Shown: piece by piece, positions 645-63,034 of the stretch | How the letters are laid out: each line of letters opens with the position of its first letter | How positions within the stretch are numbered: the first letter of the stretch is position 1 | NCBI RefSeq assembly: GCF_006345805.1 | Contig: NW_021835987.1 | Location: 278,218 to 342,217 of the forward strand | Reading direction: 5' to 3' | Length of the DNA: 64,000 bases | Source: Octopus sinensis | Lineage: Eukaryota | Position numbers and translations under genes: made by a program | Notes under the pieces: generated by a model | Told to the model about the DNA's origin: nothing | Databases searched by the model: none | Seen by the model: only the letters and a program-made list of their open reading frames with translations

Positions 645-3600
645 ACAGCCAATGGATTAAAGCATATGCCATACCAATGAATGCTGGTTCGAGAGTCTAT
701 GAGTCATTCATGAATATAGGAAATACTTCATCCTGGAAAGTGGACAAATGCAATGGTACCTTCTGTCCTAACTTCTTCCGACATCCCTTCCTTGATTTCT
801 GGGAACATCTTCCAATTAATGAGGTACGTAGCCATATGCATACACATACACTAATATATATATAATAATAGTAATAATCGTGACGTATATTTGCCATTTA
901 GATATGGCTAACCCCTAAGGGTGGATGCTACTGAAGTTTGTAGCCCCAGGAGGACACCTCCCAGAAACTCGAGTCCGTGTGTATCATAAGTTGAAGACGG
1001 GAAGGATGGCTTCCCTTTGCAAATACTGATAGGGCACAGAAAATGTGTCTATAGCCAGCGGAAGGAGGTGTCCTCCTGGGGCTACAAACTACAGTAGCAT
1101 CCACCCTTAGGGGTTAGCCATATTTAAATGGCAAATATACGTCACATGTTTTGTAGCTACCGTTTATAACACGCTCTAAGATTTATTATTAATAGTAATA
1201 ATGATTAACAGATATTTAGATCAATTCAATTGCTTGTTACATTTTTGACCTACAAAAATTATTTATGAGGAAGGCGAAACAGTGTTGAATAAAATTCTAT
1301 CCGCGGAAAACCGCAGTAATAAGAAAAGATTATCACAGACAAAAGAATCTCCTTTTGGGTTTTTTTTTTATTTGATTTTGATTTTCCAGTTTCAGCTAAT
1401 GAGCTGTGGCCATGCTGGGGCACCGCCATTTAATGAGTAAACGGGAAACAAAATCGATGAAATCAGCTTACCATACATGACTGATTTCAGCAGAAAGTAA
1501 AGCACGTGGACCTCGGTGGTACTTGGATTCAAAGCTGAATTACTTTGTCATTCTTCTTGTGAGATGGCAAGATTGAGTAACAAACAAAACCTTATGGGAA
1601 CAGACGAACCAGGGACCTGTCAGAGCCCAGATCAAGAGCAGTCATGGATCATGGCTAGTTCAAAATATAAATTTATTTCGTCACTGTATTTATTGCGGAG
1701 ATGTGTCAATTCATGAAATGTTTTACTCTAGATATATACATATATATATATATATATATATATATATATATGTGTGTGTGTGTGTGGGGGGGTGGGGGGG
1801 GTGTAATAGAGCTAAAAACGGATGGATTATTTGGGTATAACGACACACGTTTCCTTTGCAGAAGATTGTTATTATAGACACATTACGTCATGCAACATGG
1901 AATGGAATAGGTTTGAGATCGTATGTAATATTATGAAATAAGTTTGAATAACATTACCAATTCTGTAGGTCATACTGTATTAGAGGTTAATTAGCGATGT
2001 ATGCCACATAGTATCATGGTAATATATGAATTTTTCAAATGAAGGGGTATCAAATATGTTATTTGATTCATTTAGAGATATTAATCGTCTGGAAGCCGTT
2101 TAGCGACGTGCAACCGAGAGAATACCCTCCATCAGGCATTTGCCATATTCTGAACGCCTTACTTCTCTGGGCATGGACACATTGAAACATTTTTTCACGC
2201 TGAGAGTTGCTGAAGCATGGAACAAACTGCCGGCATCGGTTGTTAGTTGTCGGAGCACTGCATCCTTCAAAACTTCCATGCTTTCTGAGATTCCCCAACA
2301 CTACACCTGATTTTCTCCCCTCCATACACACGCAAACATGTATCTGACTCATACACTGTTTGCTTTCCAGACATTTGTACTTTACTGCATATACTTTATA
2401 CGCACTTTCTGACAAGTTGTGGTGCACCTGAGCACTGTATACATTGACTTCATTATTATTATTATAGCAAGATACGGATTAGGTGATAGGCCAATCAAAA
2501 TCATCAATTTTGCCTGTTATGCTTTACTGTTTACACTGCGTGTGTGTCAGTGTGTCTCAGTGTGTGCGTGTGCGTGTGTGTGCGTTTGTGTGTGTGTGTC
2601 AGTGTGTCAGTGTGTGCGTGTGTGTGTGTTTGTGTATTTGCGTGTGTGTGTGTGTGTGTGTGTTTGTGAGTTTGTGTGTGTGTTTGTGTGTGTGTGTGTG
2701 AGTGTGTATGTGTGTGTACCCGTGTGTGTATATGTGCGTGCTACATGTTCATATCTTTTGCAGGTAAAACTGGTAATCTATAAAAACGGAACCGATTCGA
2801 AAACAATCATATTTGATGGACGAAATACAACACTTAACACCTGGTTCTCTCACGAAAACTTGAAAAGTTCACCATGGGACGACCTAGCATCCGACCCCAA
2901 TCCTAAGTACTTAATGAGGTGAGTATAGTATGTCTATATATATTTTATGCTGGGGTTTTATTCCGTTACGTAGAGACTTATCATGTTACAAAAAAAATTG
3001 CCTTTCGTAGGCAACAGATAGAAAGTTTAACCTATACATTTAGATGCTAAACTTTCTGGAGACGAACAACATATGCCCAGGTTTTCAACAGTATATCTTC
3101 ATTTGTTATGATATACAGAATGCTAATTTGAACTAATACTGCTGCCGTCTGTAAAGATGAAATATATCCGGCGTTCCGTCCAGGAGGGGAACCTATACGC
3201 CAAGAAACCTTGAAAGCGGCCCTTATGAGCCAGGCATGGCTCGAGAAGGAACAACCAATCGCCGCTGCAAGAGGCTATAACTCTATTAATGGTACATTTC
3301 TGTATTTTCAACACTACACGACCAAATGAAATGCTTTCTCGTTACGAACAGCAGAGTTACCAGAATTTCACATTAAGTAGCATATTTTAAAGTGGGAAGC
3401 ACGAAAATGTATTTTCACCTTAAAATGTACACTCTTTTATTCTTTTACTCGTTTCAGTCATTTGACAGCGGCCATGCTGGAGCAGTTTTAGTCGAGCAAA
3501 TCGACCCCATGATTTATTCTTTGTAAGCCTAGTACTTATTCTATCAGTCTCTTTGGCCGAACCGCTATGTTACGGGAAAGTAAACACACCAGATTCGGGG

Positions 3601-4923
3601 GGACAAACACAGACACACAAACACACATACACACACATACACACACACACACACACGCACACACACACACACACATCTATATATATATATATATATATAT
3701 ATATATATATATATATATATATACAGTTAATCTAAACATAAAAGCACAAAAAAACACAACAACGCGACATATATTTACTTGGGCAAGTGTTTTCTACTAT
3801 AGCCTCGAGCTCACCAAAGCCTTGTGAGTGGATTTGGTAGATGGAAACTGAAAGCAGCCCGTCGTATATATATATATGTGTGTGTGTGTGTGTGTGTGTG
3901 TGTGTGTGTTTCTGTATGTTTGTCTGTGTTTTTCCCTCCAACATCGCTTGACAAAAGATGCTGGTGTGTTTACGTCCCCGTAACTTAGCGGTTCTGCAAA
4001 AGAGACCGATAGAATAAGTACTAGGCTTACAAAGAATAAGTTCTGGGGTCGATTTGCTCGACTAAAGGCGGTGCTCCAGCATGGCCGCAGTCAAAATAAC
4101 TGAAACAAGTAAAAGAGTAAAGGAGTAAACGTTTAGGCTTTCATATTCTGAAACCCATCCAACTTTTATTAACTCCACAGAAACGATCGTCCCTTCGGTA
4201 TATCAAAAGGGGCTAAGTGTACAAAGATGAGTGGCTGGTTCATTATTGATCCCCGTCCGACAAATTGTGGGTTTGCTTACAAAGATCATTCTCCTTCAGT
4301 CCGTTATTCTGATAAAAACTCGAAAGTTGTTTGGAGAAACGGTGAGTGATATTTTTATAATTTGTGTGTGTGTGTGTGTTTTGTGTGTGCGTGTGTGTGT
4401 GTGTGTGTGTGTGTGTGTGTGTATGCGTATGTGTGTGTGTGGGCGTGTGCACGAGTGTGTGTGTGTGTATGCGTATGTGTGTGTGTGGGCGTGTGCACGA
4501 GTGTGTGTGTGTGTGCGTATGTGTGTGTGTGGGCGTGTGCACGAGTGTGTGTGTGTATGCGTATGTGTGTGTGTGGGCGTGTGCACGACTGTGTGTGTGT
4601 GTGCGTATGTGTGTGTGTGGGCGTGTGCACGAGTGTGTGTGTGTGTGTGTGCGCGCGTGTATATGTGTGTGTATGTGCGTATTTATGTGTGTGAGCCTTG
4701 ATTCAACTTATTTATTATTAAGAGCATCCCAACCATGACCCTCCTGTATGTTTCCCACTCAACGATGTAAAGATTCGGCTGCTATTTCTAGTAATTCCAG
4801 TGAACGCGCATGAAGACCTTCCACGATTTATTTCCATTCCTTTGGTTATTGATGTTGTTATTGTTACTTCCAGGCTATACATTAGCAGACTCCATGGCCG
4901 TATTCATCCGCCTGAGGCAGTAG
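645..4923 (+). CDS. Paralog P1 (unit 1): 4-exon gene for an uncharacterised ~180-aa extracellular-type domain; 5' exon(s) not found
   Basis: Exons 645-823, 2764-2918, 4181-4341 and 4874-4923 all have AG/GT boundaries, with phases 1-0-2-1 that join in frame. Product: (D)[59 protein letters not shown]|[51 protein letters not shown]|[54 protein letters not shown]|[16 protein letters not shown]. It has four N-x-S/T sequons and two Cys pairs, and the same exons recur in other paralogs. Confidence 0.88.
880..1145. mobile_element. Hairpin MITE family A (copies at 19471-19733, 39464-39728, 58160-58426)
   Basis: Terminal inverted repeats of ~80 bp (gtgacgtatatttgccatttagatatggctaacccctaagggtggatgctactg...) around a non-coding core. 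Confidence 0.75.
2075..2310 (+). mobile_element. CR1/L2-type LINE 3' fragment, left arm only (copy ~40637-40872)
   Basis: [36 protein letters not shown] resembles the LE-x-VQRRAT...Y-x-ERL-x-x-L motif downstream of RT. Confidence 0.7.
3425..3625. mobile_element. SINE segment of the same family (also 3925-4125, 6055-6235, 8270-8468, 13645-13825, 15995-16190, 23655-23850)
   Basis: Recurrent ggccatgctggagcaccgcc...gtaagcctagtacttattctatcggtctcttttgccgaaccgc...gtaaacacacc motif abutting (CA)n. Confidence 0.8.
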
Positions 4924-4949
4924 AATTTATCCAGCACATGATACTATAG

Positions 4950-61600: not shown

Positions 61601-62880
61601 CTGCGATATTCTTGTTCACCGGAAGGAGTTAGAAGGGGGAAAGAAATGGCATGAAATAGAGAGAGAGAGAGAGGAGAGAGATAGGAGAGAGAAGAAGGGA
61701 GTTTATATGTAAGGGGAAAATGCGTCAGAGGGTATTACTGAAGATGAGGAAATATTAGAGAGTAAGAGGGAGAAATCCTGGAAAGAGAGAAATCTGGAAT
61801 GACAAGATGGAGAACGTTTGCGTGTGAGAGGAAGGGTGCTTGCAAAAAAAGAGAAACGGATTTGAAGTAAATTATAATTTAGGATAGTCTGTCTGTCTGT
61901 CTGTCTGTCTCTGTCCCTAGGTATGTGTTTGTGTATGTGCTTGCATGCATGTGTGACCCTCTGGATCTCTCGGCATACCAGCAAACCACAAAACCCCCCA
62001 GCCGGACACACCACTGCCACCAAGCTCATCATATATATGTATGTATGCATGTATGCATGCATGTATGTATGTATGTCTGTATGTATGTATGTATGTATGT
62101 ATGTATGTAGGTATGTAGGTAGCATGTTATGCATGCATGTATGTATGTATGTATGCATGTATGTATGTAGTATGTATGTATTTTGTATGTATGTATGTGT
62201 GTGTGTCTGTGTGCGTGTGTGTGTGTGTGTTTATGTGTGTGTTTGTCCCACCACCAACATTGCTTCACACCGATGTTGGTGTGTTTGTGTCTCTGTTATT
62301 TGGATGTTCACAGCAAGAGAGACTGATAGAATAAACACCAGGATTACAGGGAATAAGTCCAAGGTAAATTTCTTCGACTAAAGGGTGGTGCTCTAGCATG
62401 GCCACTCTCAATTGACTGAAACAAGTAGAAGAATAAAAGAATACCAGAAAAACGTTCCGTAACACGAAACCAAGAAGGTTCTTTGAATACGTACGATGTA
62501 TTTTAAGGTTAATAGTGATTCCGTTTACGTTTTGTATCTGAGATATTTTGGTTGGATTAAGTAGTCGTTGGTGTTACATTACTTTCTACATTCTGTAATT
62601 ATCACAATATACTTTTCTAGGCTTGAAATTTATGTTGTGAGGGTACCAGTTCATTACATTGACCTCAGTACACAACTGGTACTTAATTTACCGAGCTCCA
62701 AAAGACGAAAGGAGTAATAAAAATGAGTGGAAATTAGGCTAACAACTAAAGAAATACATTTTAAAGTATCTCGATCTCTTTAACTTGAGCCGATTATTCT
62801 TCATTATGAGAGTGCTAACGTGTGCGTGTATGTATGCATGTGTACGTGTCTATGTGTGCTACATGTTCATTTGTTTGCAG

Positions 62881-63034
62881 GTGAAAATAGTGTTAGCAAA
62901 AACCAAACCGATGTGGTAACTATGATATTTAATGGACGAAATACAACCATTGAAAGCTGGTTCTCTCGGAAAAACTTGAAAAGTTCACCATGGAACGACC
63001 TGGCTTCAGCCACCGGACTTGAATTCTCAATTAA
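62881..63034 (+). pseudogene. Paralog P4 (unit 2): orphan exon B
   Basis: Copy of 24293-24446 with a similarly disrupted start and no canonical donor. Confidence 0.6.

Follow-up and report, generated by a model that had tools for sequence, protein, structure and literature searches.

The terminal 64 kb of an unplaced Octopus sinensis scaffold of 342,217 bp (C12458:278218-342217; this whole stretch is called the window below) carries exons of a multicopy gene family. The window is read here, at a probability of roughly 0.7, as a rearranged and partly decayed piece of a cluster of about 80 copies that would encode soluble extracellular binding proteins of the lectin or pattern-recognition type, each composed of a PAN domain and a fibrinogen-like body. 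The reading is built on the gene structure, the family and its distribution, the domain architecture, the homology to bacterial proteins and the damage to the local copies, all of which are demonstrated in the following paragraphs. The breadth of the family, its link to bacteria and to fibrinogen and its hypervariable exon are new here.

One local copy, gene A1, lies at the start of the window. An initial annotation, made from the letters alone, had joined four short exons into a protein of about 180 amino acids (aa) and assigned it to an unnamed family of marine invertebrates. That model and that assignment were essentially right, and the junctions (823/2764, 2918/4181 and 4341/4874) proved exact. 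The four exons of that annotation are family exons 2-5 in the present numbering, family exon 1 lying upstream:

645..823, plus strand: A1 exon 2, starting in phase 1, with AG acceptor, GT donor and open frame; QWIK strand, C-x4-C pair and FRHPFLDFW helix
2764..2918, plus strand: A1 exon 3; beta-hairpin, FDGRNTT, WF and SPWDDL
4181..4341, plus strand: A1 exon 4; C..GW....C loop, the hypervariable exon of the family
4874..4923, plus strand: A1 exon 5; AG acceptor, ending in a TAG stop at 4921-4923

AG acceptors were found at all four exons and GT donors at the three internal junctions, and the joined exons form a single open frame of 180 codons. All the motifs listed earlier are present in it, with four Cys residues, in agreement with the two pairs noted, and four N-x-S/T sequons where three or four had been counted. 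The exon at 645-823 starts in phase 1; an upstream exon is therefore required and the model cannot begin there. The frame is not a chance open reading frame, because exon 3 has 79 matches in the genome, annotated Octopus and Argonauta proteins match it, and the pooled ratio of non-synonymous to synonymous differences (pN/pS) over 22 distinct genomic copies of exon 3 is about 0.46. This ratio points to a coding family under moderate constraint. Of the 79 matches (E<=1e-3; 2.72 Gb in 13,516 contigs searched), 40 lie on C30, most of them within its first 0.7 Mb, and 20 on the present scaffold; small contigs and a few chromosomes account for the remainder.

Protein searches were made with exon 3 as the scored region within a fortuitously open 169-aa frame and then with one full-length match. 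Microsatellites of the (TG)n and (GTGTGC)n type in the introns (2413-2922 and 4345-4680) generate long spurious open frames, and one of these, 169 aa from stop to stop, continues directly into A1 exon 3. About 55 matching proteins were retrieved from O. sinensis, O. vulgaris, O. bimaculoides and Argonauta hians, all labelled 'uncharacterized' or 'hypothetical', and none of them has a precomputed Pfam domain. These labels, together with the distribution described below, agree with the earlier comparison to a family that is known from molluscs and other marine invertebrates and is poorly annotated. No paper on the gene family was found by gene or protein identifiers or under the Apple domain in octopus and cephalopods, and broader literature searches brought up nothing of relevance. 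The family had also been called hidden, and the spliced protein-coding family is indeed real, but six RefSeq models on this scaffold (LOC118761913-17 and -21) already capture parts of it.

Full-length members measure 293-296 aa and consist of a signal-like segment, a domain of about 80 aa with two Cys and a domain of about 185 aa. They are encoded by five coding exons, exon 1 specifying the signal peptide and the N-terminal domain and exons 2-5 the domain of about 185 aa. Hence the earlier notion of a single-domain protein does not hold: the 180-aa model lacks the exon for the signal peptide and PAN/Apple domain and is incomplete without it, the family being one of two-domain proteins. The only hydrophobic 13-mer of a full-length member spans residues 13-25; with such a signal-like start and no further hydrophobic stretch, the secreted product suggested earlier is plausible, and secretion of the family proteins is predicted on this basis.

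Two full-length database paralogs, P0003 and P0012, served as proxies for the spliced 180-aa product in the structure, cluster-representative and family searches. The AlphaFold model of P0003 has a predicted local distance difference test (pLDDT) score of 71 overall and a moderate 65-84 in its N-terminal part. In Foldseek this N-terminal domain matched the N domain of HGF, the PAN domain of plasminogen and leech antiplatelet protein with probabilities of 0.98-1.0, root-mean-square deviations of about 3 A over 79-92 columns and a TMt of up to 0.65. PAN_1 (PF00024) was matched by 15 of the 61 aligned relatives (best E 6.8e-8; P0131 at 26.4 bits against a cut-off of 21.4), and the octopus proteins P0003, P0010 and P0002 stayed below the Pfam threshold of the PAN model, without a match. 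The domain is called PAN/Apple because of the Foldseek probability of 1.0 and the PAN_1 matches in 15 of 61 relatives, an assignment that is model-based for the octopus proteins themselves.

The domain of about 185 aa answers to no existing model. Not one of 61 diverse members matched Pfam even at E<=0.1, and searches of the PDB by sequence and by profile gave nothing for it. Single-exon matches to Pfam and PDB were dismissed as noise (for example Dit-like_CBM2 at E 0.059), and Fimbrial_K88 and Peptidase_M26_C on full-length octopus proteins as sub-threshold chance matches. DUF7922 (PF25538) was likewise rejected as a name for the domain: its 32-bit score on P0056, an amphioxus protein with four repeats, includes no individually significant stretch and is not colinear with the domain, and neither 8 further multi-repeat proteins nor the 61 single-domain members gave the match again. 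The earlier statement that no family can be named thus stands for Pfam, but a remote relative can be named, namely the body of the bacterial fibrinogen-like GGGWT domain.

When 1.84 billion cluster representatives were searched with a profile, 1063 matched at E<=1e-3 and 629 at E<=1e-10, the named ones coming from bivalves, gastropods, sea stars, crinoids, Saccoglossus, amphioxus, Macrostomum and Myxococcota. Animal proteins carry the domain by itself behind a PAN domain or a coiled coil, or in one to four copies in mosaic proteins together with Sushi, EGF, TSP1, C-type lectin, SUEL lectin, F5/8C, VWD, D8C, FN3 and ZP modules, and also in an adhesion-GPCR-like protein; all these animal partner modules are extracellular. 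The marine-invertebrate range proposed earlier is therefore borne out, but the domain is confined neither to small proteins nor to animals, since it is found in large mosaic extracellular proteins and in Myxococcota.

The bacterial relatives provide the link to fibrinogen. In the Myxococcota proteins P0096, P0101 and P0114 each domain copy is directly preceded by a fibrinogen-like GGGWT, or A, subdomain, which matches the first ~55 positions of Fibrinogen_C in Pfam, GGGWT_bact (NF040941) in NCBIfam at 107-147 bits, and the chains of fibrinogen beta, tenascin, MFAP4, FIBCD1, angiopoietin and intelectin type in the PDB. With the octopus profile, hmmsearch recovered P0101 at 1e-20 and 2e-17 and P0096 three times. 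In hhalign the bacterial units aligned with the animal domain at a probability of 100% (E 3.9e-43, 180 columns), and the aligned stretch opens with the GGGW strand, the counterpart of the QWIK strand in octopus. Seven canonical octopus fibrinogen domains were in turn matched, at a probability of 96.9%, by the N-terminal 49 columns of these bacterial units. By profile comparison, then, the octopus domain proves homologous to the bacterial GGGWT domain from the GGGW strand to the C terminus. The A subdomain itself (C...CDM..GGGWT) is absent from the octopus proteins and present only in the bacterial relatives; P0003 has no NCBIfam match to NF040941, a model of 46 positions. In octopus a PAN domain precedes the QWIK strand and so stands where the fibrinogen A subdomain would be.

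The fold searches lead in the same direction at low scores. The model of the domain is of good quality (pLDDT 89.8; predicted template-modelling score 0.88), and no PDB fold was found at E<=1e-3. The top 50 PDB neighbours are mostly fibrinogen beta/gamma, angiopoietin/ANGPTL, FGL1, ficolin and intelectin (E 0.07-0.4, probability <=0.38, template-modelling (TM) score <=0.42). Fibrinogen-type neighbours appear likewise in the viral fold library BFVD, including a cyanophage 'fibrinogen C-terminal domain' protein, again with nothing at E<=1e-3. It is accordingly likely that the domain of about 185 aa represents the body of a very divergent fibrinogen/intelectin-type domain and belongs to the fibrinogen superfamily. 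Membership of the canonical family (PF00147) is rejected, given 0 of 61 Pfam matches and an hhalign probability of 0.8%; canonical fibrinogen domains give about 14 matches in octopus, at separate loci.

The variability of the family is concentrated in exon 4. Among 16 full-length paralogs it is the least conserved exon, with a mean identity of 40% against 57-67% for the other exons. Gene A and its O. vulgaris counterpart show 5 differences over the 334 sites of exons 2 and 3 (1.5%) against 3.8% for introns (Fisher p=0.03), and 15 over the 159 sites of exon 4 (9.4%, p=0.0015), 14 of these changes being non-synonymous and one synonymous. The non-synonymous changes cluster in a patch of about 12 residues around the last conserved Cys.

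Taken together, an intact member comprises five coding exons and would yield a secreted protein of about 295 aa, with a PAN/Apple domain followed by a beta-rich domain of about 185 aa bearing two disulfide-type Cys pairs. Exons 2, 3 and 5 would supply the conserved scaffold, and the variable Cys-loop of exon 4 could be the part in contact with the ligand, in a binding mode resembling that of ficolins, snail FREPs and intelectins. The array would evolve by birth and death, through tandem and inverted duplication, deletion and decay, which in the window would have left each unit with A and its inverted paralog C as gene bodies and with B and D as exon relics. A secreted binding role is proposed because a two-domain secreted protein, a PAN domain of binding type, a fibrinogen-like body, extracellular partners of which several are lectins, a birth-and-death array and a hypervariable exon come together in one family; ligand binding itself is suggested by analogy with these relatives.

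The window itself holds two tandem copies, 1-25410 and 38582-64000, which are 93-99% identical with a unit of about 38.6 kb. When the window was searched with the 180-aa product by tblastn, both strands proved to carry related exons, which form two sets at a distance of about 38.58 kb, with exactly eight copies of exon 3, four per unit. The count of four per unit and eight in the window given earlier is correct for exon 3, but these are not eight paralogous genes. Each unit holds A (plus strand, exons 2-5), B (minus, exons 3-4), C (minus, exons 1-5) and D (plus, exon 3). Gene C is an inverted paralog of gene A, 86-93% identical including the introns. Besides A1, the loci are as follows:

39229..39407, plus strand: A2 exon 2, 99.4% identical to A1 exon 2
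41330..41484, plus strand: A2 exon 3, 100% identical to A1 exon 3
42741..42900, plus strand: A2 exon 4, 160 against 161 nt, with a 1-nt deletion in an A run (AAAA for AAAAA) and hence a frameshift
43429..43478, plus strand: A2 exon 5
8637..8791, minus strand: relic B1, exon 3-like
7200..7370, minus strand: relic B1, exon 4-like, both conserved Cys replaced
47170..47324, minus strand: relic B2, exon 3-like
45734..45904, minus strand: relic B2, exon 4-like
22500..22799, minus strand: C1 exon 1 with ATG, signal peptide and PAN/Apple; frameshifted, 300 nt where 3n+1 is expected
19791..19968, minus strand: C1 exon 2, with indels
16986..17137, minus strand: C1 exon 3, five 1-nt indels; in-frame stops, two TGA and one TAA
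14939..15100, minus strand: C1 exon 4, one stop
14660..14708, minus strand: C1 exon 5, 1-nt deletion
61274..61576, minus strand: C2 exon 1 with ATG, signal peptide and PAN/Apple; 303 nt, frameshifted as assembled
58483..58661, minus strand: C2 exon 2, intact, AG/GT, 179 nt
55688..55842, minus strand: C2 exon 3, intact; RefSeq LOC118761917 matches at 98%
53517..53683, minus strand: C2 exon 4, insertions of 2 and 1 nt; an out-of-frame stretch and loss of the last conserved Cys
53239..53288, minus strand: C2 exon 5, with stop
24311..24462, plus strand: relic D1, exon 3-like, alone, with a stop just upstream
62898..63041, plus strand: relic D2, exon 3-like, alone
34335..34987: 653 bp between two (ATT)n runs, in place of the 4.7 kb that hold exon 1 of gene A in O. 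vulgaris (described below)

Only A and C are gene bodies, B and D are relics, and none of the eight loci is intact as assembled. Exons 1, 2 and 5 were looked for at B1 and not found. The exon 4 of relic B (7200-7370 and 45734-45904, minus strand) has kept an open frame, its Cys residues being changed from C to S and from C to Y. For the copies of gene A, no exon 1 was found between D1 and A2 (25.4-39.2 kb), nor, for A1, in the approximately 10.8 kb from the neighbouring gene E to the start of the window (20 kb upstream scanned). The joined coding sequence of C2 measures 854 nt and loses its frame early. The truncated RefSeq model LOC118761917 (128 aa) matches C2 at 98-100% over exons 1 and 3; because its exon 2 matches at just 88.5%, the model may stem from another, almost identical copy on the same scaffold. 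In unit 1, at about 22747-23115, the promoter-proximal region and the first 53 nt of C exon 1, including the ATG, are duplicated in tandem over about 184 bp. The duplication coincides exactly with the break of the unit-to-unit alignment at 22931 and represents either a rearrangement or an assembly seam.

Gene E (C12458, approximately 260744-267443) lies 10.8-17.5 kb upstream of the window and has all five exons, including signal peptide and PAN, with one apparent frame break in exon 3. The spacer that follows it is the same sequence as window 24475-32070, and the D relic is what remains of exon 3 of an E-type gene, abutting the sequence found downstream of the last exon of E.

An O. vulgaris locus (L047, OX597841.1:693099-723555, encoding the protein P0001) is colinear with the unit in the window, A, B and C following in identical order and orientation. 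Its gene A possesses the exon for signal peptide and PAN (L047 10001-10298), which precedes exon 2 by about 4.9 kb, and its exons 2-5 are matched in open frames, A1 exon 2 being 98.9% identical to its ortholog. Colinearity breaks at window 34334/34988, equivalent to L047 6290/10991, so that the 653 bp listed above replace L047 6291-10990. Gene B is the same two-exon relic with its exon 4 in the same state in O. vulgaris, and this relic therefore predates the split of the two species. Exon 4 of gene C is intact in O. vulgaris, unlike that of C2. The O. vulgaris model P0001 (213 aa) stops after exon 3, and open exon 4 and exon 5 matches occur at L047 18926-19090 and 19416-19466; the 283-aa model next to it seems to stop within exon 3 of the B relic. 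Models of this family in RefSeq (O. sinensis) and in O. vulgaris are frequently truncated or chimeric.

Repeats were also observed around the A1 exons. Intron 2-3 contains a hairpin (880-961 / 1064-1145) with 82-nt arms, 98% complementary, and a 102-nt loop, which looks like a miniature inverted-repeat transposable element or foldback element without a matching Rfam family; the Rfam scan of the whole window returned no match. The intron before A1 exon 4 holds a pair of inverted repeats of about 106 nt (3487-3592 / 3961-4066, 92% complementary) that encloses CA/TA/TG microsatellites. Because similar pieces recur in the window, for example at 44484-44795 and 52218-52522, the repeat of about 106 nt is probably a dispersed element resembling a short interspersed nuclear element.

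Several observations weigh against the reading of the window as part of a functional repertoire of fibrinogen-like binding proteins. As assembled, each of the eight copies in the window is either incomplete or broken. The animal domain (58-sequence profile) aligned with nothing in the seven octopus fibrinogen domains by hhalign, at the probability of 0.8% already given, and every fold match stays below significance (best E 0.05, probability <=0.44, TM <=0.42). Between A1 and C2 there are 30 non-synonymous and 6 synonymous differences, with exons no better conserved than introns, a pattern that fits relaxed constraint as well as diversification; and the patch in exon 4 could stem from gene conversion instead of selection. 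Four rival readings were weighed. As regards the protein, the C-terminal domain might be unrelated to the fibrinogen lectins, an independent beta-rich module that was fused to the A subdomain in bacteria, the octopus proteins then being structural components of mucus, egg coat or matrix. The failure of hhalign and of Foldseek to reach significance speaks for this, as do the galectins among the top fold matches and the co-occurrence with matrix-type modules such as ZP, VWD and EGF. Yet the bacterial homology begins inside the GGGW strand and not after it, and the bacterial repeat of about 230 aa has the size of one fibrinogen-related domain. Fibrinogen-type and intelectin domains, moreover, dominate both fold searches, and the partners include the lectin modules CTLD, SUEL and F5/8C. 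A greedy alignment of the combined bacterial and animal profile with fibrinogen domains is colinear as well, the hairpins, the Cys-loops and the last strands each being paired with one another, but its confidence is low beyond the A subdomain. We consider an unrelated module doubtful on balance. That the exons are parts of a transposon or a virus-derived gene is highly improbable and was rejected: high copy number and clustering with repeats would suit such an origin, but the five exons keep their phases fixed from species to species, a signal peptide and a PAN domain are part of the products, and homologs occur in mosaic extracellular host proteins of several phyla. No transposase, reverse transcriptase or viral family was matched in the Pfam scans, and the BFVD fold search gave nothing at E<=1e-3, in keeping with the gene-family reading of the initial annotation.

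As regards the locus, the local cluster could be a graveyard in which all eight copies are pseudogenes or exon relics and the function is carried only by intact members elsewhere, mainly on C30. This falls only a little short of an even chance; it is compatible with the description of the family and denies function to the window itself. Neither A1 nor A2 has an exon 1 within about 11-14 kb upstream, A2 is frameshifted, C1 carries stops and indels, the joined C2 frame breaks early, and B and D are fragments; between A1 and C2 omega is about 1.3, and their exons are no more alike than their introns. On the other hand, A1 shows fully open frames in all four of its exons, gene A is better conserved against O. 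vulgaris in exons 2-3 than in its introns, and the colinear O. vulgaris locus retains the signal-peptide/PAN exon of A together with open matches to exons 2-5. Many of the disruptions, besides, are 1-nt homopolymer indels typical of assembly error. Within the gene C segment (15155-22931 against 53854-61707) 368 substitutions and as many as 180 indel events separate the units; indels of 1 bp number 117, of which 84 lie in homopolymers. Such a ratio, far above that of normal divergence, suggests insufficient polishing of a long-read consensus on this scaffold and consensus errors in at least one copy, which are suspected because the 1-nt homopolymer indels between units are so numerous. The frameshifts in the local copies may thus be assembly errors, and the unplaced O. 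sinensis scaffolds that carry the family probably contain consensus errors. Carried further, much of the apparent decay, perhaps the tandem duplication too, would be an assembly artefact and the real locus a single unit as in O. vulgaris, with A and C intact. Doubt over the damage is increased because A exon 1 is missing, a 184-bp duplication sits at the seam near 22931 and the window ends at the scaffold end. The (ATT)n runs that flank the region of the missing exon point the same way, as do two small contigs, C11141 and C10441, whose copies of exon 3 are 100% and 94% identical to that of gene A and which also carry family exons next to it; these contigs could represent haplotigs or additional copies of the window unit. 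Against so extensive an artefact, substitutions in the hundreds and several large indels also separate the units, and the spacer recurs upstream of the window beside a different and complete gene (E), as a true array would show; we regard it as rather unlikely.

The domain of about 185 aa occurs in more than 1000 sequence clusters from at least five animal phyla and from bacteria, without a Pfam model, a solved structure or any literature found. The link to the fibrinogen-like GGGWT domain leads to a testable idea of its function, the binding of glycans or other ligands. Octopods have only 14 canonical fibrinogen-domain matches against about 80 copies of the PAN-linked family with its one hypervariable exon. 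If the proposed role is true, the family would be a candidate lineage-specific recognition repertoire in cephalopod immunity, chemoreception or reproduction. A more ambitious version, which we hold to be improbable as a whole, is that the module forms an ancient and undescribed branch of fibrinogen/intelectin lectins common to Myxococcota and marine invertebrates, and that its fusion with PAN in octopods gave rise to a diversified, FREP-like repertoire of secreted recognition proteins, with about 80 clustered copies and a hypervariable Cys-loop exon, which went unnoticed for want of a domain model.

Among known systems, the PAN/Apple proteins (the N domain of HGF, the PAN domain of plasminogen, leech antiplatelet protein) resemble the octopus exon 1 domain in fold, at a probability of 1.0. 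The likeness is restricted to exon 1, and the octopus sequences remain under the Pfam threshold while relatives pass PF00024. The Myxococcota proteins of NF040941 type have WF..RL..S.W.DL, FSI.G, RRF.IN.Y.GC..D.GW..V....C.WE and AD.(M/L)A(I/V) in common with octopus. Unlike the octopus domain, the bacterial units begin with an A subdomain of about 45 residues (C...Y.IDPDG....V.CDM) and are C-terminal repeats of surface proteins of more than 2000 aa with TIG or FG-GAP repeats. PF00147 domains (ficolins, tachylectin-5, snail FREPs, angiopoietins, FGL1) are the nearest PDB folds and appear to show the same order of elements, from the W-strand through helix, beta-hairpin and Cys-loop with GW to a final strand ending in R; they are extracellular, as predicted for the octopus family, and have expanded and diversified in molluscs. 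The octopus domain departs from them in having no sequence or profile similarity in the body, sub-significant fold scores and no A subdomain, and their Ca2+ and acetyl-binding residues could not be recognised in it. Intelectins, or X-type lectins (human intelectin-1, XEEL, lamprey LSVL), follow the same design of a short fibrinogen-like N-terminal GGGWT region with a divergent remainder. They occupy ranks 2, 4, 5, 6 and 29 among the PDB fold matches of the octopus domain, with a probability of just 0.14-0.30, and they differ from it in their longer bodies and in the lack of a sequence match; their ligand Ca2+ site was not identified in octopus.

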